This document shows positions 530 through 28,229 of a stretch of DNA of 64,000 bases, one piece after another (within the stretch, counting starts at the first letter, position 1; the number at the start of each line of letters is the position of its first letter). Below the pieces are notes generated by a model. It saw nothing but the letters and a program-made list of their open reading frames with translations. It had not been told where the DNA came from and ran no database searches. A program made the position numbers and the translations under genes. Origin of the DNA: Malacoraja senta (taxonomy: Eukaryota); NCBI GenBank assembly GCA_038087875.1, contig CM075986.1, forward strand, positions 15,190,001 to 15,254,000, in the 5' to 3' direction.

Positions 530-1140
530 GTCAAAGGTTGAAAGTACTGAAAAAACTCAGCAGGTCATGTAAAATATGTGGATATATAATCCGAAAACAA
601 ATAATGTTTCAAGTAGAATCAAAACTGGGAAAGAAAGTTGCAGAAAAGATCAGGGTGGAATGAATAAGACAAAGGGAACATCTCTGATTGGGCGAGGCTG
701 AGGTTGCCCAGTTTTCAGAGTTGGCTGGTTAATAGATTAACTAAAGCGTTTTGAGAGGAAAGGGAAAAAGGGATGTATAAAACTGGAATGTAGGTCAGAG
801 CTGTTGCTAAAACTCTCAAATCCAAAGGAGAATGTTGGAAATACTCAGTAGATCAGGCAATATCTGTGGAGAGAACAAAACGAAGGTAATATTATAGCTG
901 AACAACCTTGCAATAGAACTGGACGAATCTGATACTAGTCGACAAAGGAAGATATCTGAAGTTGTTGAATTTGATTTTGGGTCTCTTAAGCTGCAACATA
1001 CTGAGGTAAAAGATGATCCTGAAGCTTGCATCAAGCTTTGTTGAAACTGTAGGAGACCACAGGCAGGCAGGTTGGAGTGGGGTGGATGTACAATGATGGG
1101 CAACGGGGTCTTTAATTCTTACCCCACTTTCACCCACACC
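530..1140 (-). mobile_element. Penelope-like element 3' remnant
   Basis: Minus-strand TKLDASFRIIFYLSMLQLKRPKIKFNNFR resembles the PLE C-terminus (RKLEEQHLIFRLG..QP.G.NIEFSNF); two copies of the terminal repeat follow. Confidence 0.6.
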
Positions 1141-4077
1141 AATCTGTTTGTGCTTGGTAATGAATCAACGTCAGTACAGAGAAAGAAGAAGGAATAAGAG
1201 ATAAATTTACACTGTTGCTGATCCAAAAGTAGAAATTTTGTTGGTGTTGATATAGCGTCAGGAATTAGGACAAACAATCTTTACATTGAGGGCAGTCTAG
1301 TTTAGCCTGAGATCATGCCAAGGGAAAGATATGAAATTGATGACAATATCACAGGGTTCATAGCTAGGATCAAATGTTGGAGAAAATTGAGGATTATCTG
1401 AATATCATGCAGGATAAGTACTCTAAAACCAAAACAGTGGAACTTTGGAGTCGAGTCCTGGAGGAATAATTTTGTGTCATTACATGTATAGAAGTCAATA
1501 AATGATATTGGCAAAGTGCAATATATAAGTGAAAACAGGGAGGGGCAGATTCAATACTGAAAGGTGGTGGTGAGACATTTTTCTTGAGTCTCTCTAGCTA
1601 TGCTGAGGTAAATATACATGAACTCAACCAAGGAGGGTGTTGGAGGAATCTGCTATGAAGAAATTATTCAACTCTGCAGAATAGTCAAAGAAAGTTGATT
1701 TCCTATTGTCACAGAGAAGGTTGTTTATGATAGAACAGATCATTTGTCACGGCAGAAATGGGAAACTCAAACAGGATATTAAAGGAATGACGTGAATGGA
1801 TTAAGGAATCGACATGGTTAATGACTTTGGAAAAGATTGGAGTTGGAGAAAGTGTTTTTACGTGTAAGCTTATAAATGCCTGTCACTGGTTGAACAGGGC
1901 CAGAAGCCCAGATTTCACTGAATTCATATTTTCAAATACTAACTGACAGGATGTTACTTGAGATTGATCAATTATTTGTCCTCCTCTAAGACTCAGGGCA
2001 CTGATACTCTCAAGTTAGGTTTATTGTCATATGCACAAGAACAGCGAGGAACTGATACAATGAAAATTCTGCAGCAGCATCAGAGGTAATTGACTCAGAC
2101 TATGCATAAAACCATAAATTATACATACATCATACATGACAGTGGAAAGAATCGTTAATAACATTAGCTCTCAGCTAGAGTGACAACTTGTATCTTTGTA
2201 GGTGATATTACCATCAAAATACTAACAGAAATAGGTAGGGAAGTGATGGGAGGGGGGGTGACGTTGGGTGTGAGAGGGAGATGGAAGTGACCAAAGTTTG
2301 GATAAAGCCAGACAACATGTGGTCCCGCGTGTAATATTTTTTGCCTGCAATTTTTCACTAAAACTATCCTGTGATGTCTGCCAACGTAAAAAAAGGCAGC
2401 TGCTTTGACAGGCTGAAATATTACATTGAGCTTAGTAGATTAAATTGAATGGAAGATTATAAGACAGACCTCAGGTGTTCAATCTGAGCCATTAATAAAG
2501 TGCTGCTGTGTAATCATGGGTTTCTTATTTCCTCCTGATGTGTATTAAAACTCATGGCAGAATTCAGTTGTGATTACTGAGCCATGGTGGCACTGACACC
2601 TGAAACAAAATGCATGACAGCGGAAAAAAATACCTGTAGCGTTGAGGTATGAGCTCTGTATTCAGTCATGTTTGCGGCATTTTCCAATGGAGCACTTTGT
2701 GATTATAAAGCATTATTTCTCATGGGAAATATTCCCATTTTATCAAACGGGAAAACTGAGTGATGTGTTGTTTTCCCCAAGTAGTCGGAAGCCATTAGTA
2801 TAAGTAAATGCAATTAAATGTTTCTGATGCTCATTAATCACCTGCAGTTTCATTTCAGGATATAAGCAGTGACCTGTCTTGTTCCCAGCAAACTCGAGAC
2901 CAAATGGTAAAACTGATATCAGTTATCATTAATGCACACATAATCTCAGTAAGACAGAACTAAAATGTTAGTTTAGCTATCTATATGTTTGCTTAGAAAC
3001 CGGAAAGTGGAGTATCTTTCAGCATATGATGCAACTAAAAATCAAGTTTTCCATTGGTGAGTGATAACCACTTCTGGACCCTTTTGCAGTATTCAAGAAT
3101 TTGACCAATACACTCTTACTGCATAAGCTCCAGATTCATCACAGTGTTTTTGGTCCTCCAGACCAAACCGTCACAAATACTTCCATCCAAATTCTAATGA
3201 AAAGACTCATTGCTGTGCTGGGAACCTGGGATGAAACCCTGGCCTTGGATTGGCAAGGAGAGGCTGCATGTGAGGATTGCTCGTGAGTGGGTTGGGGCTG
3301 AGATGAGGATCTCAGGGCAGCAACTTGGCTAACCTGGATCCTATGATCTTTCTCATGACCTCCTGCTGGAATTGAAGGAAACTGCTTTCTCCATCTCTCT
3401 TTATTTGACTGCACAGCTCTCACCCTGGCCCAGAGATTTCTTCATGATAACAGCTCACGTGAGAGGGGTGTTAGCAACATCCATCACATGCTGAGCAGAA
3501 TCACCACTCCTGGTTCCCCCAACAGCAGTTCTCAGGAGCAACCTGGTACTATGGGGTGACCCATTGTAGGGTTCATGATAATGGCTCCTTAAGTGCTGGT
3601 TCCATGAGCAAGCTCATTCTTGGGAATACTTGTGTAGTACCATCCGTGCTGTGGAGACTCGAGGAATTGCAGATGCAATTTTGAGCAAAACACAAGTGCT
3701 GGAGGAATTTAGCAGGTCAGGCGTGATCAATAGCAGGAATGCACAGGTGATGTTTCAGGTCAGGATCTTTCTTCAGACTTACTGTGCCATTCTAGATGTT
3801 AGAGCACCTTGCCTCATGTTTTCAACTTTTGCAGCCAAACTGATCAAATAACTACTGCTACATGCATTGAATTTGATAATGAAATAGCAATTAAATTAAT
3901 TAGAAAACACAGGGAACTTGTTTGTTCATTTTAAAAGCCCTTCCTGCACCTAGAAAGGGCTGAGGTACGCCTGTATCTACTTTTTTGGTCAGGCTGTTAA
4001 TGGAGACCCTGGGGGTTTTTTCCTGGACGACTGTAAACCATCCATGAGATTACTACAAAGTAGAGCAGGGAAGTTAA

Positions 4078-4405
4078 AAGCCCTGTCCCACTGTACGAGT
4101 TCATTCAAGTGCTCTCCCAAGTTTTAAAAAAAATCAAACTCGTGGTAAGCACGTAGAATGAACGTAGCGGGTACGTCGGAGCTCGGGGACGTCTCTTAGC
4201 GGCTCGTAACGCTAACGGCAGGTACTCGGGAAACGCGGTAAGCTCGGGAAGACTCGTGAAGATTTTTCAACGTTGAAAAACGTCCATGAGAGCCCCATGT
4301 ACATGTCCATGTACCTACGAGCGGCCATTACCGTAAATCTCCGAGTTCGAATCAGGGCAAACTCGGGAGAACTCATGAATGAACTCGTACAGTGGGACAG
4401 GGGTT
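4078..4405. mobile_element. MITE, CTGTCCCAC-terminus family A (PIF/Harbinger-like), 328 bp
   Basis: TIR CCCTGTCCCACTGTACGAGTTCATTC / GAATGAACTCGTACAGTGGGACAGGG; flanks TAA and TCA; close paralog at 60402-60731. Confidence 0.85.
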
Positions 4406-5407
4406 TCAATCTCAACATAACAAAAATAGATGATATCCTCATTGTCACATTGCTTTTTTCAGATCTTACTGTGTACAGCTTTCCTTGTTTCCTGATTTGC
4501 GATGATAGCTACTTGTTCGGCATGGATATATTGGGCCAAAGGGACCTGTTTCTGAATGTATGAATCTATGACTATGCTTGAAAAACACTTTATTGTCCAC
4601 ACGTGAATATAGACTCTCTTCATAAGGACAACCCCTTCATTCCAGGAAAAAGCTTGTAAATGTACACTGAAGTGCCCACAAGGCCTGTATGTTCTTACTT
4701 AAATGTGGAGTACAAAACTCCATCCTGTACTCTGAATGTATATGTTAAGTAACTCTTTTGTACTCCAATCCATTGCAATAAAAAAACAACAACCCATTTG
4801 CCTTCCAGCATATTCATTGATTGTTCCCAGAACCACCTCACACAAGCTTTTCCGTTAACAATTTCTGTTAAGTTTCTTACCATTTTACAAATGGTGCTTT
4901 TCTATTTATTTCCACCAAGGTGAACAGCCTTACAAATTTCCACAACTCCATCTGCCTTTACCTTGCTCCATCAGTTGAAGATTCTAAGCACCTTCACATC
5001 TCACTTTCTTATCTAGTTTTCATATCATCATCAAAATTAGATACTTTACACTCAACACAGAGCGTATTGTCAATTGCTTATGCATTACTGTTCCTGTGCC
5101 ATCTACTAGCAACTGTTTGGTGATCTGCAAATAACACGTTAATTTTCACTCTCTGTTCTTTAAACAATTTTCAATCGATGCTGATGAATCCATCCTGCAC
5201 CACATTGTACAGGATGTGTACTGAATGAGACTGAGGGGCCTTCGCTATATCTATTTATCAGAGTACTAAGTATACATTTAGTAACTCTTATTTATCTACA
5301 GTTTTACAGATAGCTTGTCAGCTCCTCCAGAGTTAATGGCTACTCCAGACTCTCCCACTTCCTGTTATCAGAAAGCTCTGAGCTAGAGGATAGCAATTTC
5401 TGGGAGG

Positions 5408-6383
5408 CAGGGCCGGCCTTAGGAGGTGCGGGGCCCAATTGGGAACAATTTTGGTGAGCCCCAGGTTCCCAGCCAAGGTCTGTAGATTCATAGAAATATA
5501 ATTAAAGTCTATTATAGACTTCATATCTCCATGGTAGAATGGAAAGTAATCAAAATGTGCGCTTAAAAGGTGCATGCGACTTAATGGACCAAACAGATCT
5601 AAGCTACATTTTAATATAAAATTGCAAACATGTAGGCCTACAAGTAACAAACAAAATGTGTAGATCACCTCTGAAAAGTACATAGTTACAATACCACTTG
5701 TTTTAGTGACTGTGAAATGAAAAAAAAAAGTAATTAAATTAAATAGATCCTGGAAAACCAATAACCATTGGTGAAAAAACAGTCCGGGCATTAAATTTTG
5801 GGCTTCAGCCCCATCCTAACTTAGTTGTGTGTGTTAGTTTCTGTGCGTGATGTGTGTGTGGGAGGGAAGGAGAGAAGGAAGGGAGGGAGGGAGGGAAGTA
5901 GAGAAAGGAGGGAGGGAAGGAGAGAAAGAAGGGATGGAGCAAATGAGAGAAGGGAAAAGAGAGAGGAAGGAGAGAAGGGAGGGAGAGGGCCGGCAGCGGG
6001 AGCGGATGCCAGGTTCCGGGCGGACGGGTATGAGCTGAGGCCGAGGTTTGTAAACGTTGCTCCAACCCCTGGCCCGGCCCTCCGTGTATTGTTCACCGCG
6101 TCTCCCCAATGGAGAGAGAGGGGTGGAGCCGGGGCTGTGTGCCTGAAGCACGGTGACTGAAGGGGCGGGAGCGCTGCCCCGGGACCGTGAGGGAATGACC
6201 CACCTCTCCTTCTCCCCCTTCTCCATTCCCCCTCACACCCCCCTCCCCGTCTACGCCTTTGTTTCCCCTTCACCCCTCTCTCCCCCCTCCACCCGGGGTA
6301 CATCTACCCGTGCCGAGAGTAGATTACTCTGGCGCGGGGCCCAATTGGGAGCAATCGGTCCAATCGGCTTAAGACCGGCCCTG
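5408..6383. mobile_element. Non-autonomous hAT element (Tip100-like termini), 976 bp
   Basis: TIRs CAGGGCCGGCCTTA / TAAGACCGGCCCTG (1 mismatch); perfect 8-bp TSD CTGGGAGG at 5400-5407 and 6384-6391; subterminal GCGGGGCCCAATTGGGA near both ends; internal GA-rich and CT-rich tracts; no transposase. Confidence 0.92.
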
Positions 6384-7660
6384 CTGGGAGGCTGTTCTGT
6401 CTGGCCTTTCATTCTGTCTGGCCTTTCATTCTTATAGCCTGGTAAAGGAGATTGGCAGTTCCTTAATATGTCCAGCTGCATATGCATTGCTGAACCAACC
6501 CCTTCATTAAATGATGCTGATCATAGAGCTGCTTCTTTTGGAAGAAGAACCATTTGCTCAACTCATCCTGCTTCCTGTCCCAGCCTCTGGATTGGAAAAT
6601 GGTCTTGGACTCTATGAGACAAAGGGCATAGGTTGCTGCTTCTCTATCTCTTGGAGCCCCTCCTTCATATTCACCTCCATCAAGAACTGCACGCTACTTC
6701 AGGGTTGACACACAGTTCCATCTATATTTCTAAATACATTTGAGGATGAAGAACCTTTTGATGTTCATCTTGATTACGTCCCTCCAATCCATCAGGGAGT
6801 CAAGGTGGGTTTCACATTTCTCCAATACGTGTAATCCCCTAAAAGTTATTTGTTCTCTGGGGTCAACTGTTCAACTTTCAGCTTCTATGTCCCTTTGTCA
6901 GCCTTTTGGTCTCTCTGCATACAGCCAACAGGAAGCAATTGTCAGAGTTGAGGCTCTGTTTTTCTGTATTATGACTCTCTGAATCTATGTCGACTTGGTG
7001 AAGTTAATGACTTAGACTATCATGCATTGGTGGTTAGAGTTCCGCTTGCTAGACATGGTCAGTGACTGGCAAATGTTACTTATCACTTGTCAACCCATGC
7101 CTGAATGTTGTCCAGGTCTTGCTGCTTGAAAAGATGGATTGCTTCATTTTGCTGTGGAGTTGTGAATGGAATTGAACAACTTACAATTGTTGGAATACTT
7201 CCCCTCTTCTGAACATACAATGAATTGGGGGTCAGTAATGAAGCATCTGAATTTGGCTGTTCAAGTTTGATCCAAGGATCAAAATTGGAATGCTCAAATA
7301 GTAATTTTGAAAAGAAACAAAAATTAAAGGCTAAAAGTTTTTTTAAAAAGCTATAGTGATAGTGACTGGCATGGACTGATTATGAATTGCAAACAAGAGA
7401 TGAACTGCTGGTTCACTTTGTTGGTTGTCCATCCTTCAAGGACTCCTTGCATGTCAACCAACACAATAGATAAATGGGATGGTGCAAGTTATGATAGGTT
7501 CAGTAAAGCTTGAATGTAACAGTGAAAGAGGCCAATAATCTGTTGGTATTACACTGGCTGTTTTGAAAAATAATCCAGTCAACCACATTGCATTATTCTT
7601 TCCTGAGCACCACTTTTAGCTCGTCAAATTCCTTACTGAAGGCAACTATTGATCTGTAAA

Positions 7661-7763
7661 CAAAGGTAGACAAAAGTGCTGGAGAAACTCAGCGGGTGCG
7701 GCAGCATCTATGGAGCGAAGGAAATATGCAACGTTTCGGGCCGAAACCCTTCTTCAGACCCGG
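7661..7763 (-). mobile_element. 103-bp Penelope-terminus insertion with 16-bp TSD and hammerhead-like core
   Basis: Perfect direct repeat ACTATTGATCTGTAAA at 7645-7660 and 7764-7779; minus strand reads CTGAAGA-A-GGGTTTCGGCCC-GAAA-CGTT. Confidence 0.85.
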
Positions 7764-8098
7764 ACTATTGATCTGTAAATGCGGCTTCTTCCTCACAATA
7801 TCTCTGGTTCTTTTGCCATTCATCCTAAAATGGTCCTGTCCGGTTATCAACCTTTCACCCATTAGAAAGCATTTCTCTTTATTATATCCATTGAAATCCA
7901 GCGCAACATTAAACGTTTTTTTCGTTTTTTTAATTAATATGGTATGCTAAAGGAAAATATCCAAGATTATTCACATTAATATATTTATAAATTTCCGTTG
8001 CCAGTCTAGTATGCCTCTCAGAGCCTTACATCTTTCTCAAATTGCCCAAAACTGCACAGAACACTTCAGCTAGGGCAGGTCTAGTGTTTAACATTGGT

Positions 8099-8412
8099 CA
8101 AGAGTGTTTTATTGTCATATGTCCCGGACAGGACAATGAAATTCTTACTTGCTGCAGCACAACAGAATATGTGAACATGTAAACATTGTATATAACGGGG
8201 AAAAAAATAAAAAGTTCAATAAATAACTAATATAGTGCAAATAACAAGTAATATAGTCTTTTGCAGTTCAGAGCTCATAGCTTATTTGTTGTGTTTAATA
8301 GCCTGATGGCTATGGGGAAGAAGCTGTTCCTGAACCTGGACATTACAGTCTTCAGGCTCCTGCACCTTCTTCCTGATGGCAGTGGTGAGATAAGTGTATG
8401 GCCAGGATGATG
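8099..8412 (-). mobile_element. Rex/Babar-type LINE 3' fragment
   Basis: HHPGHTLISPLPSGRRCRSLKTVMSRFRNSFFPIAIRLLN, then 3' UTR ending TGACAATAAA. Confidence 0.8.
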
Positions 8413-8902
8413 TGGCTGAGTGGATATAAGTTTATGTTGGGTGGAATATTGGAGGTCAAGCACAAGAACAGTGAAATCATCAAGTCTAGGGGAAGCACAA
8501 GATGGAGCCCGATGCTGAGTATTTCCAGCATTTTAGGTTTGCTTTTACATAATTGTATGTGAAACTGACTGCCAGGGAGAAGCTTGCAAATAGTGTCCAG
8601 TGAAAAGACTTTATGGCAGGGACCAACAACAAAGGCCTCAAGGACATTTCTGTTTAGTCAATCCTGATGAAACAGCAGTGGAACAAATCAGAGTGCACTT
8701 TACTGCAATGATTTATTTTTTATCATTCTTCAATATGGCCATTACGATTTCAAAGTACAACTCAAGTAACTCAGACCTTGCAGAACCGTCGTCACGCACA
8801 GGATGATTCATTGTAGTTGGCCATAACCATTTATCTTCAGAAGTGACATCCATCAACATAACGAATATCAGAGAATAATTACACTTCCTCAGGTGGCATA
8901 GA

Positions 8903-9163
8903 GGGGTGCAACGGTAGAGTTGCTGCCTTACAGCGCCAAAGACAGGGTTCAATCCTGATTACAGGTGCTGTCTGTACAGAGTTTGTACATTCTCCCCGGT
9001 TTTCTCTCCCACTCCAAAGACGTACAGTTTTGTAGGTTAATTGGCTTGGTGTAAATGTAAATTGTCCCTGGTGTGTAGGGTGGTGTTAATGTGCAGGGAT
9101 CGCTGGTCGGTGCAGACTTGGTATGCCAATGGGCCTGTTTCCACGCTGTATCTCTAAACTAAA
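8903..9163 (+). mobile_element. HE1-type V-SINE
   Basis: tRNA-like head (CGGTAGAGTTGCTGCC, B-box GGGTTCAATCC), V-domain GAGTTTGTACATTCTCCCC, CR1-like tail GGGCCTGTTTCC..CTAAA repeats. Confidence 0.9.
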
Positions 9164-9844
9164 TACCAAGGCATGTAAAACTAGACTAAACTAGGAATTA
9201 TCAAATTGCCATTCTAAACAGTGTGGTAACACTTTGAAAATGAGAATTGATAACATTTACAGTTTTAATTGTAACAGAATCAAGATGGAACATTAAGTGA
9301 GTTTATCTCATAATAAATTGAACATAATTACTTTTCATATTTTGTTTGGTTTCCAATTCACAACTAGATTACTACAATTTATCATGGAAAATGTGACCTT
9401 GTACTTTATTTCAGTACCACTGCTATCTGGTTGTCAAGATTCAGCAAATACCATCTGCTTAGATCTTTACCAATGTTGCTCAGTAATCAGTTAATAAAGG
9501 ATGAGCAAGCTTAGCTTAGAAAAATGCCTATTCATTGTTGAAGGGCACATTATTGACGCATGACTGAAAACTTGACCTGCAAAAAGTCACCATGCTTAAG
9601 TGTTTTTGGTGATGAAGGTGAAATGCAATACGTGAGGGTCACAACGACCGCAAAAAACGTATTCTCATGTTCATAATCAGAACATAGTATTTGCACAACA
9701 ATCTTTCAACATTTCACAATCAATGAACACAACTGCCAAACACAATTAGTAAGGAAATAATTATCTAGTAGATTAGTTTCAAATGTTGCTGTTATATTTG
9801 GTAGATCTTAGATGTGAATTCTGTTTTAGTTATTGAGATAACTA

Positions 9845-10137
9845 GTTTAATTTAGTTAAGGGATACATCAAGGAAACAGGCCTTTCGGCCCACCGAGACC
9901 ATGCCGACCAGCAATTCCTGCACACTAGCACTATCCTACACACACTATGAACAATTTTACCAAGCCAATTAGCCTAGAAACCTGTACGTCTGGAGCATGG
10001 GAGGAAACCGGACCACCAGGGGAAAACCCATGCAGGTCACGGAGAGAACATACAAACTCCATACAGTTGGCACCCGTAGTCCGAATCAAACCCAGGTCTC
10101 TGGCGTTTAAGGTAGCAACTTTACCGCTGTGCCACCC
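9845..10137 (-). mobile_element. HE1-type V-SINE
   Basis: Reverse complement of the same consensus. Confidence 0.9.
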
Positions 10138-12129
10138 CTATAATTTGCAGAAAACTTCTTGTGGCGTTTTAGAGCACAAAACAGGCCCTTTGGTCCAATT
10201 TATTCATGCTGCCCACGTTGCAGAACTGAGCTAGTCCTACTTGCCTCCGCTTGGCTCATATCCCTCCAAACCTCTCCTATCCATGTACCTGCAAGACAAA
10301 GGCAGAGTTGACAAAGCCAGTCTTGCCATTTGCCAGGTAATAGAATCTCCTTAATAGCAAGGGGCACCAGTATTACGTAGTCCCGCTCCACCAAAACATT
10401 TCAGGTTGATCGAGTTCTTGGCCGTTCCTAGGGTTTCTCGCCCAGTCTGGTATCCCTGGGGTGATGGGAGATGAGTGAGGAGTGAATTTGATTAATATTG
10501 TCCATAGGTCTATTTGCTTAAGGGATGTGGATTGTGGGCAAACAATTCAACGAAAGGTGAAGTTGGACCATATATTTTCTACAACTTTTCACACTTGTGC
10601 TTTATCCAGATGATTAACATGGACTGCTCAGGCTTGTTTGTTGGTTGTCCTTTGTGTTGTGCCTGAGAAGGCAGGTATTAGGTTTCCCACATTCCCTAAA
10701 AAGAAGATAAAAGTTTTATCAAGATATCATCAGTGCATTTGAAAATTTATCCTGTAATCTCTGATGCATAAATGGACTTGTAAGAGGCTAGTTAAAGAAA
10801 ACCAGCTGCACGAGTTACAGCTACGACCTACTAATATGTGATGATGAGTGTCAGGTCAATCTGTCCAATAAGGCAAAGAAAACTTCACATCATTAGTTCA
10901 GCCACACGTCCCAGCGGCACTAATATACACAAACAAGGGTTAGCTGTGCATCATTTTCAGTGGTTTCACAATGGATGTAAGAGCAGACATCTTATTAATT
11001 ATTACTGTCATTGTGTAACTCACCCTTTGTAGCTCACATGTTTATACTACTGAATGGGAGATTTCTAATGTGCTTGTACAGTTTTCTCTGAATTAGGAGG
11101 AATTATTTGTGCCAACGTTTGTAGAGTTTTCTATATTTGCAATTGTCTTTGGGCATCTTAAACATTTTGTTTTTATGGGCACTTCCCTTTTCCTGAAATC
11201 TAAATTTACCAGGCAACAATTATAGTTAACAATTGTGGCTGTGTTTTGTCTGTCTCCTATCTCATTTTTTGTGGTCTTAAATACAAGATTGTTGTACCCT
11301 CCAAATACTGATGTAACTGAATTCAGCTGACCTGGTACAGATTTAGAATAGGGCAGCGATGAAAGGCATCCTATCAATTTCGGAAGGACTGATGCTGGTT
11401 AATTTGCTGCTTTAGTCCTAAAGAGACCTGCCTGTCACTGAAGCGGTCACACTGCCCACCTTTTGAGCTAGCTTCAGTCATCTCTGCAGTCTATTGCCAA
11501 TGTAATGGCTGTGTTGAATGGTACTATATAATTGAATAGCAGGAACTATTGAAAGCTTCCTCCCCACCCCAAAGGAAGCCGCAACCTGTTCCATTTTTAA
11601 GACTGCGTCAGCTGCTGGCTCAGTAAGTGGACGTTTGCTAATTGCCACACGACATTCAGTCTTGATCACATTTCCTTGATTTCAGTGTGCTTGCTCGGTC
11701 AACTGTAAGGGCCCTGTTGGAGTGGCAGTAGTGGGAGCACAAATGTTGTCATCCTCAGAGATGTATGCCATAGATTTTCTGGCACCTCTCCCCCCCCATC
11801 CCCCCAATCTTCCCTGGCCAGAGAAGCAGATGGCAGTAGTTTGCACTTGAAGACAAATGCCACAGCCGCTTTCACAGCCTTGAGGCCTCTGCTAAAAATG
11901 GACTCCAGCAATATGATGGCAGCTAGTTGAGCCGGGATGATGAAGCATTGCCTCTGGTGCAATGACAGCTGAAAGGTCTGCTGTCATCCATCAGCATGTA
12001 GTCAGGTTGTCTGGTGAAAATAAGTTTTTATGCTGAAGAGTGCAGAGACATAGGGAAGGTTGAAGCTGTGCTCCTAGATTCATGCTCCTTGCGTCAAGGC
12101 CTCTCTGCTATCACTGGCTCTTCATACCA

Positions 12130-12248
12130 TTGTAAATTGTCTCTAGTTGTGTGTGTAGGATAGTGTTAGCGTGCGGGGATTGCTGGTCGTGGCCGACTCG
12201 GTGTGCCGAAGGGCCTGTTTCCACACTGTAGCTCTAAACTAAACTAAA
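12130..12248 (+). mobile_element. HE1-type SINE 3' half
   Basis: TGTAAATTGTC..GGGCCTGTTTCC..(CTAAA)3. Confidence 0.85.
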
Positions 12249-14289
12249 CACTGCAGTGTCTCTCTGCAGTGGTTGTCATGCTGACCGGTGACCTCTGTGA
12301 GTGGTTGGATATATCGGTCAGCATATTTACCCAAATTGGAGCCAGAATATCGCATTAGCATTTGTTGCTTCAACAAGTGTGTAATACTTGAGAAATTCCT
12401 CTTAGTAGTCCTAATCAACACAATACTTGACTATGTAGCATCATGTTCTTGAATAAGAGGTGGACACAAAAGCTATCCACTGTAAAATGAGACAAATATG
12501 TCCTCATTTACTGCAAAGATCATTTTATTAGTTATTCCTATTGGTTTTCCAATATCTATCTTAGGTTTGCAGTAGTTTGCACTGTTGTGCTGCTGCAAGT
12601 AAGAATGTCATTGTTCTATCTGGGCCATGTGGCAATAAAACACTCTTGATTAGTCCGTACAACCACTTTTCCTGCTTTTAGTAATCGCATCAAACCCAGT
12701 CCAGTCAGATGGTTGAGATGTCCATTTATCACTGAAAAACAATTCAAGTTATTTTTGCATGCATGGTACCTTTCTCTACTGCAGCTAGACTCTGGAGATT
12801 TAACCTGACCTTCGATGAGAAGGGTAAATTAAGTAGTCTTGGAAAATTCCAGGAGGTTTTATAATGACATAGTATTGCAATCATATGACTTTTCATTTCT
12901 ATTCTATTTGTAATCCCCAGCGACCTGGTAAATTACACTGAATCATTAATTGACATTTAAAACGTCCAGGAAGCCATGTTGCTTCCACTTGATCAAATTG
13001 GTTCTAAGATTTTTACAAAGTAGACATATATTTAAGCAGAAATAAAAGCACAGGTGCAGCTTCTTTGCTGACCTTCCCCATATGTCCTCTGTATTAAGCT
13101 GGAGACTTGTATTGCACAAAGCAAAATTCATGCTAGTTTTTTAATATGGCAGTTAAGACAACACAGAATGGCCACATCTAATTAAACATTAATGGAGTAT
13201 ATATAATTATGGGTGGGGTGGTACACCATGTCCATTTGGTGGCACTGAAGATATGCCTCACCTGCGCATTGATGTCAATGTATTTTATTGCTGCCACCAA
13301 GACCTCATTCACCATGCTCACATGGTTTTTAATTTATGGCCTTTTTAAAATTAAATTGATCCTACGTTTAACATTATGCTCTCCAGTAGTTTGTCAGAGA
13401 AGTTTTAAAAACATACCATATAAAGTTGGAGGAAGCAATGAACTAAGAAAAAGTTGAAGTCTAAAGGAAAGTGATTTATAACATTGAATCGTGAGATTTG
13501 AAAGAGAGCCAACTATCTGAACACACCTTATCCACATGCAATTATTAACATTGTCATGAGGAGATCAGGATGTGTCGTTGTAGAGAGCACTACAAGTGTC
13601 TGAATAGCAGATATCAAAATGTTTAAAGCTTAACTTAAATAATTGGACAATGTTCTAAAAAAATCCTTTCCTGCTTAAACAGCAGAGGTTCCCACCACAT
13701 TGCAGAACTGTTGATAAAAATATTTTGACATTATCTGGTGTGGGAATTCTAGCACAAAGCACCCATTTTGAATTTAATTGTGATTTAAGTTGTTTAAGTG
13801 TATAAACTTTCCGTAATTTTAAACAGTTACAAGGTATTGTTGATAATTTATTTATTGTGCTAAACGTATCACATTTCTGATGACTCTGCATGCACTTCTC
13901 TAGCTACTTCCATGATAAATGATAAAGCAGTATGGCTTAAAGCATTGAAGAAAGTGTTTTTAAAAGTATTTGTCTAGATTTTTTGTACGTTTTATCTTCC
14001 AAATGAGACATTTCTCCAAAGCTCCATCTGCTCTCTGAGGAAGATGATGTAATAGAGCAAAGAAATTATCCCATAAATGTCATGGTCAATATTTATTTCT
14101 AAATCAGCAATTCTAAAAACAAGTAATCTGCACATTGTCATTTTTCCATTTATGTGATTTGATGGTAAATTAGCTGCCAGATTTTCAATTTTGCAACATT
14201 TCCAAAGTACTTAATTGGTTACTAACCCATTGACTTATTCTGAAAGTGGTATATGGCACAATACAAGTGCACTACATTTATTTCCTTTG

Positions 14290-15070
14290 TTAAGGCACGT
14301 GGGATCCATCTAGGTTTGAAAGATTAGATTCAAATTTATCTTGGCCATATAAAACATGAGTAGTGGCAGAGGGTTGTTATTCTGACTGGTAATCTGTGAC
14401 CAATGTTATTCAGCAGGGATCAGTGCAGGGACATCTGTTGTTTGTGAAATATACAAATGACTTGGATGAAAATGTGGTTGTGTAGTTTAATAAGTTTGCA
14501 AAAAACACGAACCTGGCAAACTTGTGGACAATGCTGAAGGTTGTCAAAGGGTACAGCAGGATATTGATCAGTTAGAAATACAGGTGGGAAAATGGCAGAC
14601 TGAATTTAATCTGCAGAAGAGTGAGATGTTGCATTTTGGGAGGTCAAGTGTAAGAGGAAAGCATACAGCAAATGGCAAGGCCCTTTGGAGCATTGAAGTG
14701 CAGAGGGGTCTAGTGGTGCAAGCCCCTAGCTCCCTGAAAGTGGCCACACAAGTAGGTTGGATGGTAAAGGAGGCATGCAACATACATGCCTTCATAGGTC
14801 AGTATGTTGAGTGGAAAAGTCAGAAGTCATTTTGCAGCTGTATAAAACTTTGGTAGATACACATTCGTTGTTTTATTTGCAGTTCTGATCACAGTATTAC
14901 AGGAAGGATTTGCCTCGATTAAAGAGTATTCGCTGTAAAGATAGGTTGGCAAACATGCAAAGTTTTATCTGGAGCATCGAAGGTCGAGATTTGATGGAAG
15001 CCTAGAAAATTATTAGAGGCATAAATAGGACAGAGTCTTTGTCCCAGGCTAGAAATATCAAATACTAGAG
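14290..15070 (+). mobile_element. Degenerate CR1 LINE RT fragment
   Basis: Decayed NDLDENV..KFA and GCQRVQQDIDQLE..WQTEFN..LHFGRS motifs with stops and frameshifts; boundaries approximate. Confidence 0.85.
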
Positions 15071-15071
15071 G

Positions 15072-17198
15072 TCCATAACCCTCCAAATCTGTCCTATCCA
15101 TGTACCTGTCCAACTGTTTCTTAAACTATGGGATAGTCCCAGCCTCAAATAATCCCTCTGGCATCTTGTTCCATCCACCCACCATCCTCTGTGTGAAAAA
15201 GTTACCCCTACTCTGTGCATCTACCCGTTCTATTCCTCTCATGATTCTGTATACCTCTATAAGATCTCCCCTCATCCACCTGCACTCCATGGAATAGAGA
15301 CCCAGCCTACTCAACCACTCCCTATAGCTCACACCCTCTAGTCCTAGCAACATCCTCGTAAATCTTTTCTGAACCCTTTCAAGCTTGACAATATCTTTCC
15401 TATAACATGGTGCCCAGTACTGAACACAATATTCCAAATGCGATCTCCCCAACGTCTTATACAACTGCAACATATATGTGAGGGCGGCACGACCGACGTT
15501 GCAGTTGTATAAGACGTTGGGGAGATCGCATTCTGCAGTCCGTCTGTCTTTTTTTAAATTTTTTGTCCCATTGAATGGTTTGTTATGGTTTTTATATTGT
15601 TTTTTAGCTGTGTATAGCGGGGGGGGGGGGCGGAGACTTTTAAATCTCTTCCCTGTACGTGTGACCTTTTCCCTGTCGGGTCTCCGTTGTCGTTGGGACC
15701 TAGCACCGTGGAGCGGCCTCCAACCAGAACGACCTGGGGGCTCCAGTCTCGGAGCCTGTGGACTTACCATCGTGGGGCTGGCCGGCTTCAGAGTGTGGAG
15801 AGCTGTGGTGGCGCGCTGCTGTGACCCGACTCCGGAGCTCGGAGGCTCCAGCCGCGGGTCCGGTGGACGGTGACATCGGGAGCTCGCGGGTCCCTGGTGG
15901 GAGACCGCTTTTCGGAGCTCCCGCAACGGCAACTTCTCCCGCCCGAGTTGCGGGGTTGAGGGTGACCCGGAGCGGGGCCTTGCATCGCCCGGCGCGGCCT
16001 TAACGGCCGCGGGACTTGCCATCGCCCGCCAGGGGCTTTAACATCGGGAGAAGAATGGAACAGGGGAGAGACAAGACTTTGCCTTCCATCACAGTGATGT
16101 TTGTGTGTCTTGGTTCTTTTCTTGTTTTTTGCAGAAACCAAATTTTGTTTGAACTTCTTGTTAGGTTCAAATGACAATAAATTTGTATTGTATTGTAATC
16201 TCCCAACTTCTATACTCAATATTCTGTCTGATCAAAGGCCAAAGTGCCAAAAGCCTTTTTGACCACCTTATCTACCTGCGACTCGACCTTCAAGGAACCA
16301 TGCACTTGTACTCTTAGATTCCTCTGCTCTACAACACTACCCAGAGGCCTAACATTTACTGTGTAAGTCCTGCCCTTGTTAGACATCCCAAAATGCAACA
16401 CCTCACACTTAAATTCCATCAACCATTCCTCCGCCCACCTGGCCAATCGATCCAGAACCTGCTGCAATCGTTCACAACCATCTTCACTATCTGCAAAACC
16501 ACTAACTTTTATATCATCAGCAAACTTGCTAATCTTGCCCTGTATGTTTTCATCCAAATCATTGATGTAGATGACAAACAGTAACGGGCCCAACACCAAA
16601 CCGTGTGGCACACCACTAGTCACAGGCCACCATTCTGAGAAGCAACCTCCCATCATCACCCTCTGCTTCCGTCCATGGAGCCAATTTGCTATCCATTCAG
16701 CTATCTCTCCTTGGATCCCATGAGATCTAACCTTCCAGAGCAGCCTACCATTCGGAACCTTTTCAATCTCCCTACTGAAGTCCATCTACACAACATCTAC
16801 AGCTCTGCATTCATCAACATTTTTGCTCACGCCTTCAAAAAAACAATCAGATTTGTGAGACACGACCTCCCACGTACAAAACCATGCTGATTGTCCTTAA
16901 TCAGCCCTTGCCCATCCAAATGCCTGTATATCCTATCCCTCAGAATACTCTCCAGTAACTTACCAACTAGAGATGTTATGCTCACCGGACTATAGTTCCC
17001 AGCATTTTCCCTGCAGCCCTTCTTGAATAGAGGCACAACATTTGCCACCCTCCAATCCTGTGGTACCTCTCCTGTATTTAAGGACGACTCATAAATTTCA
17101 ACCAGAGCTCCCGCAATTTCCTCTCTAGTTTCCCGCAATGTCCTCGGATGTATCTGATCAAGCCCCGGAGATTTGTCTACCTTCAAACACGACAGTAC
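15072..17198 (-). mobile_element. 5'-truncated CR1 LINE (RT region), interrupted at about 15472-16197
   Basis: ORFs 16827..17186 (WRVANVVPLFKKG, QHGFVRGRSCLTNL) and 16216..16785 (YINDLDE, SKFADD); 3' part LQLYKTLGRSHLEYCVQYWAP. Confidence 0.95.
15533..16197 (+). mobile_element. GC/CpG-rich non-autonomous retroposon nested in the CR1
   Basis: Interrupts otherwise contiguous CR1 sequence; ends in AATGACAATAAA plus (TTGTA)3, a LINE-type tail; no recognisable coding capacity. Confidence 0.7.
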
Positions 17199-18352
17199 CT
17201 TCAGTACTTCCTCGATGGTAACCGTGACTGGGCATGGATTTGGGTCATCACCCTAATGTTGCTGTGAACAGCAAACTGTGAGAAAGGACGTATATTTAAG
17301 CAGCCTGAAATGTTCCTGAGGCTAGGAAGATAAAAATTACTGTGATCTTCACTCCCATGGGCACAGCCGTCCAAGCATGCGTATGAGGTCAGATTTGGTA
17401 TCACAGATCTCAGGAAGAATCATCTTGGTGAAGCATAACCAGTGTAGACATAGCTCTCCCAAGAAGTCTAGTTCTAGGTTTAGATCAATGTAAAGTGTGG
17501 GTGTATAAGATCTTGCATGATATGCACTTCAATGTCTCATCTCACCTGTTTGTTGTTAATGCTCATGAGGTGCCTCCATACAGCTGAGCAAGAGGAGGGT
17601 GATGTGTTAACATATCCACTTTTGAAATTAAGTTTGAATTAGAAAACTACCTGAAGATGAAAAGAAGGCTCAGCGATAAGTGTGAACTGTACTGAGAAAG
17701 TAATGAAGCTTCAGTGTTAGGGAACAGCTTGGCAAGAAATGCAATATGATTTTTTTTGTCCATTAAATCACACAATCTCAGTCCAGATTATGTTAGTAAA
17801 ACTGGATTGTTCTGTGAATAACAAGGAATTATCAATTGTCTGTTCAACAGAGCTGAAAACCATTCTGGTATTTAAAGTTAGGCCATGTACTATTGTTGAC
17901 ATCATATGGGGGGAATGAGTTTTATATCAGAATCATGTTTTGAGTATTTCTGAAAATTCTGCCTGAACAACTTGAGCTGTGTGATAAAAGGCTGAGAAAT
18001 AAGCATAAACTTGCTGTAATCTTCCTTTTTAAGCCAAATTTGATCTGCGCAGCATGTCTTTCACTGCTCGGAAAATAAATTCTTTGGCTTAGCTCATTAT
18101 CCTGCTGCTGTGTAGCGGGAATTGCTATGTGCAGAGCTTTCGAGGGGAAATTGCTGTGTGCAAATTGGCTGCTTTTATTTTCCTAAATTAAATCATGAAT
18201 AAACATCACAGAGTGCTTTGTTGGCTGTAAGTGCTTTGGGAGATCCTGAGGATATGAAACTCATATGAAAGTCATTAAATATTTCTTTTTTCCCCGACAA
18301 AGTTGATGCACTTCTCTTAATTGTATCTGGAAGCACAAAAGCGAAGAAGTAA

Positions 18353-18589
<237 letters not shown>

Positions 18590-18952
18590 TAGAACTAACT
18601 AAAGTCAATGTGAAGCAGCTGCGTTGATAACAATGCATAGAAACATAGCAAATCGGTGCAGGAGGAGGCCATTTGGCCCTTTGAGACAGCAGTACCATTC
18701 AATATGATCTTGGCTGATTGCAATGGCAGATTTAAACTGCTACACCATCCTATTATATTTACCGCTGTCTCAGTGTGATACTGACCAATATTACAGATGA
18801 CATTTCTTTTTATTTTCCCTTCAATCCTGTTCCAGTATATCTGTCCTTCCACCAGTTTTGTCTCCTAATTGCAGTGAGGGCTGGTAATATTGCAAATCCA
18901 GGTCCTGTCATTCCAAACAACAATCCAGAATATCTCCATAGAATCGGTAACT

Positions 18953-19530
18953 CATAGAACACAGAACAGTACAGCAGAAGAATGGGCCCTTTGGCCAATA
19001 AAGCCTGTGCCGAACATGATGCCAAGACTAACTCTGCCTGAACATAATCCATATCCCTCCATTCCCTGCATATCCATGTTCCTATCCAATCCTATCTCTT
19101 AAATATCACTATCGTATTTGCCTCAACTACTACCCCCGGCTGTGCACTACAGATACCCACCACCCTCTGCGCAAAAGAAACTTGCTCTGCATAAGCGACT
19201 TTGAGTCCTGAAAAGCGCTATATAAATAAAATCTATTATTATTATTATATCATCTTTAAACTTTCACCTTGAAGCTATGTTCTCTAGTATTTGATATCTC
19301 CAGCCTGGAAAAAGTTCTGACTGTCTCCCCTATCTATGCCTCTTATAATTTAATATACTTCTATCAGGTCTCCCCACTATCTTCCAGAGAAAATAATCCA
19401 AGTCTGTCCAATCTCCCCCTGCAGCAATTACCGCCTAATCCAGGCATCATTCGGGCTGGCCTCCTCTGCACCCTTTTTAACGCCTCCATTTTCTTCCTGT
19501 AATGTGTCGACCAGAACTGCACGCAATACT
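18953..19530 (-). mobile_element. CR1 3' fragment
   Basis: Reverse-complement CR1 tail: CATAGAAC..GGCCC..CCATATCCCTCC..ACCAGAACTGCACGCAATACTC. Confidence 0.8.
19191..19248 (+). mobile_element. L2-type 3' terminal fragment inserted in the CR1 piece
   Basis: AAGCGACTTTGAG..GAAAAGCGCTATATAAATAAAAT plus (TAT)n, the typical fish L2/SINE 3' end. Confidence 0.65.
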
Positions 19531-22416: not shown

Positions 22417-23090
22417 AGGGCCTGTCCCACGTACGTGTCCTTGGCATGCAAATTAAGCGACCTTGTGGTCACGTTGAGGGCACGGGCATCGTATGGCCGC
22501 GCTGGGCCGGTCCCACTTAGAAGCGCGGAGGGGTATGTAGTTGTGCGCGACATCGAAGCGGGGCTCCGAAATTTTTGTAGTGAACGAAATCTTCGCGCGC
22601 CAACGGCCTGTTGCGGAACTGACGGCCAAAGTGGGACAGGCCCAAGACCCTGGCGCGACGCAACGTCTCACCTTCAACAGCAGTAGAAGCAGGCAAACGA
22701 TCACCGAACTCGGCCTGGGGCTCACGGCCGTTGCGGTCCGGATCCGCCCCCACTTCTACTCCCAGAGCAGGGCCAAGAAAATTGAAGATGGACACAAAAT
22801 GCAGGAGTAACTCAGCGGGACCGGCAGCATCTCTGGAGAGAAGCAATGGGTGACGTTTCAGACTGAAGAAGCGTCTCGACACGAACGTCATCCATTGCTT
22901 TTCTCCAGAGATGCTGCTGGTCCCGCTGAGTTACTCCAGCTTGGTGTCCATCTTCAAATGACGTCACGCGCTCCAGACGGCTGTGCGTACGCATGTAATC
23001 GCGCCCGGCCTTCGCGGGACTATCGCGGCTCAACGCGACCACGAGGTTGCGTAATTTGCGTGCCAAGGACACATAAGTGGGACAGGCCCT
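22417..23090. mobile_element. MITE, CTGTCCCAC-terminus family B (PIF/Harbinger-like), 674 bp, CpG-rich
   Basis: Imperfect TIRs of about 60 bp, AGGGCCTGTCCCAC...GTGGGACAGGCCCT; flanks TAA and TTA; internal palindrome at 22782-22957. Confidence 0.85.
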
Positions 23091-24109: not shown

Positions 24110-25281
24110 TATTAATCGAGCCATTCCATCTCCTTTTCCTTTTTCCATATTCTTCCAAAGAGTCCGTATCCTGGAATATATAGTTCCCAGCCTTTATCAC
24201 CTTGCAGCCGAGCCTTGTTATTGTACTTGGTCATATGGATGTGTTCCTTTTCGTACTATCAATTCATCCAACGTTTTGCAAATGTGTACATTACAATAGC
24301 GATGTTGTAAATTTGTTTTTAAAATCAATTTTATTATATTGCAATTATTTTTGCAAATGCATCCATATAGTTCTATCCTTTATTGCTTGTTACACTCTGG
24401 TTATCATCGCCAATTTTAGTGCCGTGCCTTGTCCTTTCTCTTTAACCTTCAGAATTTCCCTCACCTGAACCCTGCCTGTACCAGTTGGTTTTTTTAAAGC
24501 ATACTTTATGCTTTATTTAGTGTGATTTTTTCAATGTCCTTTATGTATGTAAATCATTGCAACCCCTGATCTACCTGCATAATTTCAAAATGCCATTATG
24601 CATTTTTGAGGGTTATTGCTGCTATGTTGCAGTATAATTTCCAACTTAGATAGATGACCATTGCTACTCAGTTTTCTATTTGTTTTGCTTTCTACTGAAT
24701 CTATTCAATTAAGCATGCTGTGTTGTGCACATTATCTAGCCCGATGCTAGAAAAATATGTAAATTTCAAAATCTTCGCTTAAGAGAGGAGATTCGTGGCA
24801 CTGCAGTGGTTTCTCCCTATTGGCACAAGGCACGGAGAAAGATGACAACAACAACCTCCAACCCTAGCCAGTTTATAACTCGGCCAAATTTTGCAAAATA
24901 CATGAAAATATTTCTGTTAAATAACATTGAATTAATTAGCTTGCAAGGAGTAAAAAGCTCAGATTTAAAAATCTGTACTAAAATAATATTGCATTTGATT
25001 TTTTTTTAAACTTGAGACCTACATGTAAGAAGTTAAGTTTGTGCAATCAAGTTTTTGGATGTGATAAACCTAATCCGAGGCAAAACATTTAATACAAAAT
25101 CATTCTTAACATTTTGAGAGTTTTGAATTCTTCACTATCAACAATAAAAGTGCGCACCTTAAAACCTCCCATCATCTAATATATTTATATAGCAGCTTTA
25201 ACAATGTAAGCTATCCTGGTTCACAGGATCATTCTTCATCTCTTTACCACATTGAGGGCACTGTCTAACATTTACAAAATA

Positions 25282-26891
25282 CAGTGGCTTGCAAAGGTTT
25301 TCATACCCCTTGAACATTTCCACATTTTGTCACGTTACAACCACAAACGTAAATGTATTTTATTGGGATTTTATGTGATAGACCAACACAAAGTGGTGCA
25401 TAATTGTGAAGTGGAAGGAAAATGATACATGGTTTTCAAATTTTTTTACAAATAAAAAACTGAAAAGTGTTGTGTGCAAAAGTATTCAGCCCCCCTGAGT
25501 CAATACTTTGTAGAACCACCTTTTGCTGCAATTACAGCTGCAAGTCTTTTGGGGTATGTCTCTACCAGCTTTGCACATCTAGAGACTGACATTTTTGCCC
25601 ATTCTTCTTTGCAAAATAGCTCAAGCTCAGTCAGATTGGATGGAGAGCGTCTGTGAACAGCAATTTTCAAGTCTTGCCAGAGATTCTCAATTGGATTTAG
25701 GTCTGGACTTTGACTGGGCCATTCTAGCACATGAATATGCTTTGATCTAAACCATTCCATTGTAGCTCTGGCTGTATGTTTAGGGTCGTTGTCCTGCTGG
25801 AAGGTGAACCTCTGCCCCAGTCTCAAGTCTTTTGCAGACTCTAACAGGTTTTCTTCCAAGATTGCCCTGTATTTGGCTCCATCCATCTTCCCATCAACTC
25901 TGACCAGCTTCCCTGTCCCTGCTGAAGAAAAGCATCCCCACAGCAATGTGCTGCCACCACCATGTTTCACAGTGGGGATGGTGTGTTCAGGGTGATGTGC
26001 AGTGTTAGGTTTCCGCCACACATAGCGTTTTGCATTTAGGCCAAAAACTTCAATTTTGGTCTCATCTGACCAGAGCACCTTCCTCCACATGTTTGCTGTG
26101 TCCCCCACATGGCTTGTGGCAAACTGCAAACGGGACTTCATATGGCTTTTTTTCAACAATGGCTTTCTTCTTGCCACTCTTCCATAAAGGCCCGATTTGT
26201 GGAGTGCACGACTAATAGTTGTCCTGTGGACAGATTCTCCCACCTGAGCTGTGGATCTCTGCAGCTCCTCCAGAGTTACCATGGGCCTCTTGGCTGCTTC
26301 TCTGATCAATGCTCCCCTTGCCCGGCCTGTCAGTTTAGGTGGACGGCCATGTCTTGGTAGGTTTGCAGTTGTGCCATACTCTTTCCATTTTCGGATGATG
26401 GATTGAACAGTGCTCCGTGAGATGTTCGAAGCTTGGGATATTTGTTTATAACCTAACCCTGCTTTAAACTTCTCCACAACTTTATCCCTGACCTGTCTGG
26501 TGTGTTCCTTGGGCTTCATGATGCTGTTTGTTCACTAATGTTCTCTAACAAACCTCTGAACAGAACAGCTGTATTTATACTGAGATTAGATTACACACAA
26601 GTGGACTCTATTTACTAATTAGGTGACTTCTGGAGGCAATTGGTTGCACTGGATTTTATTTAGGGGTATCAGAGTAAAGGGGGCTGAATACTTTTGCACG
26701 CGACACTTTTCAGTTTTTTATTTGTAAAAAAATTTGAAAACCATGTATCATTTTCCTTCCACCTCACAATTATACGCCACTTTGTGTTGGTCTATCACAT
26801 AAAATCCCAATAAAATACATTTACGTTTGTGGTTGTAACGTGACAAAATGTGGAAAAGTTCAAGGGGTATGAATACTTTTGCAAGCCACTG
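25282..26891 (-). mobile_element. Full-length Tc1/mariner DD34E transposon, IR/DR type (Passport-like), 1610 bp
   Basis: TA|CAGTGGCTTGCAAA...TTTGCAAGCCACTG|TA; 213-bp TIRs at 25282-25494 and 26679-26891, each with outer and inner GCAAAAGTATTCA-type direct repeats; TA target duplication. Confidence 0.97.
25500..26519 (-). CDS. Tc1 transposase, 339 aa, uninterrupted ORF
   Basis: Paired-like HTH with GRPPK AT-hook and RRKP NLS-like motif; WSDETK, QQDNDPKH and SPDLNPIE with 34 residues between the second D and the E. Confidence 0.97.
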   Translation of the reverse strand: MKPKEHTRQVRDKVVEKFKAGLGYKQISQASNISRSTVQSIIRKWKEYGTTANLPRHGRPPKLTGRARGALIREAAKRPMVTLEELQRSTAQVGESVHRTTISRALHKSGLYGRVARRKPLLKKSHMKSRLQFATSHVGDTANMWRKVLWSDETKIEVFGLNAKRYVWRKPNTAHHPEHTIPTVKHGGGSTLLWGCFSSAGTGKLVRVDGKMDGAKYRAILEENLLESAKDLRLGQRFTFQQDNDPKHTARATMEWFRSKHIHVLEWPSQSPDLNPIENLWQDLKIAVHRRSPSNLTELELFCKEEWAKMSVSRCAKLVETYPKRLAAVIAAKGGSTKY

Positions 26892-28229
26892 TATATTGCA
26901 ATGATTCACCTGACAAATGCAACAGTACCTTTCAAAACTGTCACCTTTTACCAAGATAGTCATTGGCTGCAGGCACATGGGAACACCACTATCTGTAGAT
27001 TACTCTGCCAGACCCATACCATCCAGGCGTGGAATTATCATAGACACAAAATGCTGGAGTAACTCAATGGGTCAGGCAGTAACCAGTGTGTCCTCCACAA
27101 CCAAAATAAATAAGATAAGAGAAGAATTCAAAAAAACATTATATATTATAACGTAATATGTAACAACCAAAATATAATAATGACCATTTTCAGGTTGTTT
27201 TATTTCACTTCAGTTTCTAACCTGGTATTTCTTAGATTGGGTTGGACTTGCTCTTTTGATGTGAATTCCACATAAGACACAAATCAAGTTGCGTTGTTTA
27301 GCAATCAGTGCTTTCCTTGGAGATTTGCCAGAGCACTCAGACCACGGCAGGTCACTCCAGGGCGATACAGTGTTTCGGAGGATACAAATTTACAATAACA
27401 TGTGACTTTGTCGATCCCTTAGTAAAGTAGTTGTAATTTTGGAAAATAAGTAAATTTTGTTGAAAATGAAGAGGGAAATTGTTTTCACAAGTGTTATTTT
27501 GCACTAAAATGGATTGTCCTGTATCTCCCACAAACAGCAATGTGATGAACACTAGATAATCCGGTTATGTTAAAAGATAGATATTGATTCAGACTTTTAT
27601 TTTCACCCGAGAATACAGACAGGGTATTAGTTTAACAAACTTTGTACTACTGTCTCAGCAGCTGTTAGAAGAGAATTTTGAATAGAATATCAGAAATCTC
27701 GACTTAAATTTTATCTTTCACTGGAGGTCAGCTTGAATTTCATTGGTGATAAATGTGAAATGAAAAGTTAGAACTGATAGTTGCAACATAAGCATGCAAA
27801 TTATGAATTTATTTTCACTATGCTGTTGGCCAATCACCTGAAAGTTGTAATCTTTTCATCATTTGTTCCTTAGATAGGACATATAATTATTTGGGTTTAA
27901 TGCAGACTATGAAAAACAAGTTGAACGCACTGATAACAGCAGAGGCTGTTGGCCTTAACAATATTCTGACTGTATTGCTGATGATATGCTCTAGGACTGA
28001 TTGCGCCTTGATCCAGTCTCTGCAGTACAGCTACAATACTGCCATCTGCCTGAGCATGGAAGATTGTCTAGGTCTGTCTTGTACAAAAAAAAAGGACAAA
28101 TCCGATATAACTAATTGCCATCAGTAATGTATTCAGTAACTTTCTCACCCGTAACTTATTCACTTTGCTTAATTTAAATTCATTTATGACCACTTAGTTC
28201 TGCACACAGTTCTTAGTCAACATATTGGT

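Follow-up and report, generated by a model that had tools for sequence, protein, structure and literature searches.

An ordinary, slightly decayed copy of an abundant Passport-like Tc1 transposon family, probably acquired horizontally, in a skate genome

We analysed a transposon at positions 25282–26891 of the window, that is, the whole 64,000-nucleotide stretch of Malacoraja senta DNA under study. In all likelihood it is a neutrally decaying insertion of a Passport-like Tc1/DD34E transposon of the IR/DR type, which is very abundant in this skate; the family was almost certainly acquired horizontally, and the transposase frame of this copy has probably stayed open by chance. The window copy is an ordinary, slightly decayed member of its family.

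Results

Architecture of the element

The element measures 1610 bp, is flanked by TA on both sides and lies in a region without N stretches. Its tips read CAGTGG from 25282 and CCACTG up to 26891; it opens with CAGTGGCTTGCAAA, and the far end is the reverse complement of CAGTGGCTTGCAAA. The terminal 28-mer was found at both element ends and nowhere else in the 64-kb window, with 0 occurrences expected by chance. A repeat finder showed the arms of the terminal inverted repeats (TIRs) to be 94% complementary, and pairwise alignment gave a TIR length of 213 nt, with mismatches at exactly 8 positions; further inwards the identity collapses. The terminal repeat core GCAAAAGTATTCA recurred about 185 nt inside each tip, which is the IR/DR layout; the repeat pairs were 26677–26704 with 26862–26889, and 25475–25498 with 26860–26883. 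TIRs of about 200–250 nt with an outer and an inner direct repeat (DR) in each correspond to the IR/DR group of Izsvak. Likewise, the TA duplication, the DD34E triad and the N-terminal paired-like bipartite helix-turn-helix (HTH) found here are those of Tc1/mariner DD34E elements. Hence the original prediction of a TA duplication and 213-bp IR/DR TIRs with about 8 differences was confirmed. The features, by window position, are as follows.

25280–25281: TA target-site duplication, left (TA also at 26892–26893)
25282–25494, plus strand: TIR on the 3' side of the transposase gene (window left); outer DR about 25282–25313, inner DR about 25467–25498
25500–26519, minus strand: stop-free transposase ORF of 339 aa, Tc1/DD34E
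25686–25688, minus strand: codon of catalytic E278
25791–25793, minus strand: codon of catalytic D243
25944–25949, minus strand: codons 191–192, GGGSIMLW changed to GGGSTLLW (I-M to T-L); the family and all relatives read I-M
26064–26066, minus strand: codon of catalytic D152
26520–26678, minus strand: 5' untranslated region (UTR), with a 7-bp deletion between 26559 and 26560
26572–26579, minus strand: conserved TATAAATA (TATA-like box) in the 5'UTR, common to relatives
26679–26891, minus strand: TIR on the 5' side of the transposase gene (window right); inner DR 26677–26704, outer DR 26862–26889/91
26892–26893: TA target-site duplication, right, read from the sequence

The inverted-repeat match also ran 10 nt past the element on each side (25272–25281 and 26892–26901), with 8 of the 10 positions complementary. 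Because the complementarity continues outside the element, the pre-insertion target, TTACAAAA-TA-TATTGCAA, was read as partly palindromic; it is also AT-rich. Sleeping Beauty-type integration sites are AT-rich, partly palindromic targets.

The transposase contained the Pfam domains HTH_SB (residues 1–51), HTH_Tnp_Tc3_2 (70–138) and DDE_3, and its C-terminal 228 residues matched the catalytic domain of SB100X (5CR4) with an E value of 1.7e-86. The catalytic triad was located at D152, D243 and E278, with 34 residues between the second D and the E. Indeed, the stop-free 339-aa ORF with an intact D-D34-E triad had already been noted in the first reading of this DNA.

Placement among Passport-like elements

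As the reference copy of Passport (PPTN), we used L009:1112-2737 from the plaice genome, which is 1626 bp long as published and is matched exactly by the published end primer and start-codon primer (PMC2651795). The window element was 83% identical to this copy in nucleotides overall, 89% in the ORF and 84% in amino acids, and the TIRs were 80% identical in one arm and 61% in the other. We then placed the transposase in a maximum-likelihood tree of 39 transposases, with proteins at the distance of Sleeping Beauty (SB) as the outgroup. Plaice Passport was sister (SH-aLRT 96) to, and placed outside, a 24-row clade with a support of 99, which contained the skate copy together with Pangasius, Oreochromis, piranha-type characiforms, Cirrhinus, Polypterus, Xenopus, salmonids, gar and a poison frog. 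The batoid copies formed their own clade (support 95).

Both the tree grouping and the nucleotide identity of more than 80% to the verified PPTN copy, the latter being the criterion for Passport-like elements used in PMC2651795, assign the window element to the Passport-like group. Passport sensu stricto is the plaice, flounder and turbot element, 98–99% identical among flatfish, whereas the window element shows 83% nucleotide and 84% amino acid identity to PPTN. On these identities, the window element is a relative of Passport, not Passport itself.

The nearest named relative was a copy from the catfish Pangasius djambal, with 91% nucleotide identity over 1377 nt from the element tip, TIR and UTR included. 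Furthermore, pangasiid protein fragments shared a 90%-identity cluster with batoid-type ORFs. At the amino acid level, identities were 87% to Oreochromis, 87% to Pygocentrus and 84% to Xenopus. The transposase had been predicted to be closest to that of flatfish Passport; the Passport-like grouping stood, but the pangasiid catfish, cichlid, characiform and Xenopus elements were closer than Passport itself. An exact-sequence look-up of one transposase of the family core (defined below) returned a single contig; many identical loci were not seen.

Private changes and decay of the window copy

For comparison with close relatives, we defined a family core of 8 ORFs from at least 5 samples (L012a, L012c and L015–L020), using natural contigs only; several of these contigs were assembled at low coverage and may each merge many copies instead of representing one locus. 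The core ORFs differed from one another by 0–3 nt in 1020, whereas the window-copy ORF was 12–15 nt (about 1.3%) from each of the 8. Over the whole element, the identity of the window copy to L015 was 98.0%, and the alignment contained a single 7-bp gap. Positions at which nearly all family contigs in four runs disagree with the window copy coincided with the differences from the core ORFs.

These differences gave 10–12 private amino acid changes: K26Q, L31S, R69G, Q124K, K127M, T171P, I191T, M192L, R236Q and I310M. The off-consensus QASNIS, RARGAL and GGSTLLW picked out by the original prediction were indeed private changes, from QALNIS, RARRAL and GGGSIMLW, respectively. I191T and M192L interrupt the GGGSIMLW strip, which is present even in SB100X, and three adjacent bases there (25946–25948) differ from nearly all family contigs. 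Together with R236Q and K26Q, they hit otherwise nearly invariant positions, and L31 aligned to a leucine of the PAI helix-turn-helix of SB. Some private residues were also seen in relatives, namely P171 in plaice Passport, M310 in a trout element and S31 in a gar element. Since each of these occurs in one relative, not all ten changes need be harmful, and the transposase of the window copy could retain some activity.

Outside the ORF, the window copy lacked 7 bp in the 5'UTR, about 40 nt upstream of the ATG and just downstream of the TATA-like box. The missing bases were kept in every relative (batoid-type contigs, catfish, plaice and others). The 7-nt sequence, GGCCTTC on the plus strand, accounted for about 3% of the word depth in the host run, yet every longer family contig carried it. 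Either some short insert-bearing contigs were left out, or a sizeable subfamily shares the deletion. One outer DR had been noted as mutated. It carried one private A>G change at the left tip (GCAAAAG to GCAAAGG), but the neighbouring A/T varies in other copies as well.

Against its sister copies, the window copy showed a dS of 0.018, a dN of 0.014 and a dN/dS of about 0.8, a pattern of change that is neutral as judged from these substitutions. Its terminal branch in the tree was 0.031, about ten times the 0.003 of its sisters. In a simulation of 20,000 trials, we also introduced 13–15 random substitutions into a family-core ORF. The frame was still open in 56–60% of the trials, with 9–11 amino acid changes on average, as observed. 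An open frame is therefore expected by chance and is no sign of selection or youth. The idea that the open ORF and the near-identical TIRs reflect recent activity was not borne out, as the copy is about 1.3% (ORF) to 2% (element) from the core.

An alternative is that the window copy is an active autonomous transposon, with a functional transposase and functional ends, that inserted recently or is still jumping. The complete structure, the open ORF and the intact DD34E triad would be in keeping with this, as would the tolerance of some private residues in relatives and the precedent of native Passport, which is active without reconstruction (PMC2651795). Against these stand the 12–15 private ORF substitutions at a near-neutral dN/dS, the changes at nearly invariant positions, the deletion beside the TATA-like box, the private outer-DR change and the chance expectation of an open frame. 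In addition, none of the host-run contig joints listed skipped 25282–26891, as an empty site would, although this is a weak argument that covers contigs only. We consider an active copy unlikely. The earlier suspicion that this copy may be dead appears reasonable from its changes, and neutral decay remains our preferred reading.

Considering the divergence of about 1.3–2% and the substitution rates of elasmobranchs, which are reported as slow, the age of the insertion probably lies between millions and tens of millions of years, as an uncalibrated estimate. Dating by the differences between the left and right TIRs was rejected, since a cut-and-paste element may already have differing arms when it inserts.

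A separate observation concerns L012 (ENA ERZ25070917 contig, about 1–19400), in which three Tc1-family copies lie 8.1–8.6 kb apart with the same LINE fragment before each. Because the copies share arm-specific mutations, which is also relevant to TIR dating, and the same preceding LINE fragment, the triplet has the appearance of a segmentally or tandemly duplicated, Tc1-bearing unit of about 8.3 kb, not of three independent insertions.

Horizontal transfer of the family

The cartilaginous and bony fishes split about 450 million years (My) ago, long enough for saturation of synonymous and non-coding sites. We calculated dN/dS between the window ORF and its relatives by the Nei-Gojobori method. 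The dS was 0.106 to the Pangasius djambal copy, 0.14–0.20 to three Logan contigs and 0.27 to plaice Passport, and dN/dS across these comparisons was 0.25–0.54. The non-coding 5' TIR and 5'UTR were 89–92% identical to those of the catfish, the conserved TATAAATA box included, and between batoid and teleost copies the non-coding TIR and UTR were 80–92% identical. The transposase tree was incongruent with the host phylogeny. Furthermore, the best 120 transposase matches came from teleosts, Polypterus, gar, sturgeon/paddlefish and frogs; no shark or chimaera protein was among them, though Callorhinchus proteomes are in the database.

As a control, we examined the largest LINE reverse transcriptase (RT) ORF in the window. 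Its best named matches were the batoids Hypanus, Leucoraja and Mobula at 80–85%, and identities were 59–70% in the chimaera, 53–60% in sharks and about 45–55% in turtles, birds and frogs. This gradient identifies the host as a batoid; it tracks the host phylogeny and so provides a control for a vertically inherited element.

Similarity far above the host divergence (with host dS taken as saturated), patchy distribution and phylogenetic incongruence were all found for the transposase, and these are the usual criteria for horizontal transfer. The transfer proposed in the original prediction is well supported by these comparisons: the family appears to have crossed between bony and cartilaginous fishes. 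Inheritance from the jawed-vertebrate ancestor of a family that is merely well conserved would agree with the ancient and widespread occurrence of Tc1/DD34E elements, but it is very improbable in view of the low dS (0.11–0.27), the similarity of the non-coding TIR and UTR, the host-incongruent tree, the absence of sharks and chimaeras from the best 120 protein matches, and the near absence of TcMar elements in sharks and chimaeras (PMC12361510).

The element, not its flanks, was also present in an RNA run with the label 'amphibian metagenome', with about 100 positions differing from the window copy; most of those listed were shared with teleost copies. Viral contigs scanned with the transposase and with a 12-protein alignment yielded no relative.

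Abundance and spread

In the host run X1, the word depth was 22–40 in the flanks and 2e5–1e6 in the element (about 10^4 times the flanks), with 40,605 contig pieces. By likeness to the element, 22% of the pieces were at least 99% alike, 27% were 95–99%, 33% were 90–95% and 18% were below 90%. Summed word depth, a rough proxy and not a copy number, suggests about 10^4 copies and tens of Mb, as an order of magnitude only. This abundance agrees with the TcMar content reported for skates, 3.28%, compared with 0.14% for sharks and 0.03% for the chimaera; the same paper describes 'three rounds of expansion' in skates (PMC12361510). That 2025 study mentions neither horizontal transfer nor the family responsible.

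One X1 contig passed from 24700 into the element up to 25306 with 0 differences, so the left junction is real. The family was also found in longer contigs of two further organisms, B and E, at 98.5–99% identity. As these share the ultra-abundant short retroposon of the host, they are probably related cartilaginous fishes; the flank depth was 0 in their shallow runs. The original prediction had spoken of a young invasion. Relative to the split of about 450 My this holds, but the family is already huge and heterogeneous (half of the contig pieces are less than 95% alike) and also occurs in organisms B and E.

That the element is a contaminant from a teleost or amphibian, or an artefact of assembly, is hardly credible: vertebrate Tc1 and LINE proteins do occur mislabelled in bacterial assemblies, but the X1 contig enters the element from unique flank, the element depth is enormous in two host-organism runs, and the family recurs in organisms B and E with the abundant short retroposon of the host.

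Neighbours in the window and side observations

As the first reading of this DNA had stated, the LINE copies in the window are truncated or frameshifted; none of their ORFs, all of them fragments, exceeds 298 aa. An Rfam search of the window gave no match. Just downstream of the Tc1 element, a 40-nt piece (27040–27079) had the highest word depth of the window, about 5 million in the host run. It was also present in organisms B and E and absent from the amphibian run. The piece matches the 5' part of a hammerhead-bearing retroposon at 7645–7779, and partial copies were observed at 43237–43276, 43908–43947, 22788–22827 and 7667–7704.

Vertebrate Tc1 transposase and batoid-type LINE RT were also encountered under bacterial names on very short contigs (P0055; P0129, P0135, P0137), with labels such as E. 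coli 'IS630 family transposase', Aeromonas, Klebsiella and Proteus. These proteins are probably fish DNA contamination of bacterial assemblies.

Discussion

The history that we propose for the window copy draws on the mechanisms of Sleeping Beauty and Passport. By analogy with these systems, the 339/340-aa transposase would bind the two direct repeats in each TIR of about 213 nt through its paired-like PAI+RED domain, and the DDE centre would excise the element, which would reinsert at a TA with duplication of the TA. The family would have entered the batoid lineage by horizontal transfer from bony vertebrates, or would be shared with them, and would then have amplified to the order of 10^4 copies. 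The window copy would have inserted at a TA of an AT-rich, partly palindromic site and gathered about 1.3–2% private changes without selection, its reading frame surviving by chance. Its own transposase is probably impaired, judging from the positions changed, but an active family member, should there be one, may still mobilise the element in trans.

One close comparison is with Passport of plaice (PPTN; Leaver 2001; Clark et al. 2009, PMC2651795). The two share the TA duplication, CAGTG termini, IR/DR repeats of about 200–215 nt, a paired-like DNA-binding domain, DD34E, and a conserved TATA-like box and 5'UTR. Their sizes are 1626 bp with a transposase of 340 aa for Passport, and 1610 bp with 339 aa for the window element. 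The terminal repeat is CAGTGGCTTGCAAAAGT in the window element and CAGTGCCTTGCATAAGT in Passport. Passport is present in 200–300 copies in plaice, whereas the skate family reaches about 10^4 in its host. Passport is, furthermore, an element of demonstrated activity. The nearest named kin are the pangasiid elements and the Passport-like elements of the Eagle/Glan type in Xenopus tropicalis and teleosts (Clark et al. 2009), the assignment of these relatives to the Eagle/Glan subfamily being inferred from their host species.

Sleeping Beauty is a reconstructed consensus of salmonid elements. Its SB100X version shares with the window transposase the fold and mechanism class, the GGGSIMLWGCF strip, DD34E and a matching PAI subdomain; it differs in belonging to another DD34E subfamily, with far lower identity. 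An SB/Passport-type Tc1 has already been described from a cartilaginous fish, namely the ZB-like Tc1 of Callorhinchus milii, with 1612 bp, 340 aa, TIRs of about 200 nt, a TA duplication and 125 full copies (PMC9777934). Unlike the skate element, it belongs to a different clade and a chimaera host, and no Callorhinchus protein was among the best 120 matches of the window transposase. The ZB survey lists no batoid (PMC9777934).

The Passport-like group of Tc1 elements, and its horizontal spread among fishes and frogs, became known in 2001–2009. What is new here is that a candidate family for the TcMar excess of skates and rays is named, that its dS to teleost copies is 0.1–0.3, and that catfish-type elements are its nearest named kin. 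These results can be used for genome annotation and possibly for the study of transposon transfer into cartilaginous fishes. The window copy itself carries no special weight, being one among roughly tens of thousands.

A broader proposal, which we put forward only tentatively and hold to be possible rather than likely, is that this Passport-like Tc1, with pangasiid catfishes as hosts of its nearest named kin, passed between bony fishes and batoids no more than a few tens of My ago, accounts for much of the published TcMar expansion that sets skates and rays apart from sharks and chimaeras, and still has intact near-core copies able to transpose. Near-core intact ORFs are present in public contigs, several of them possibly being a collapsed consensus. 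It has been suggested that internal fertilisation shields cartilaginous fishes from the horizontal transfer of class II elements (PMC5811955). If the proposal is true, the family would be a counter-example to this idea and would provide a naturally active Tc1 in a cartilaginous fish.
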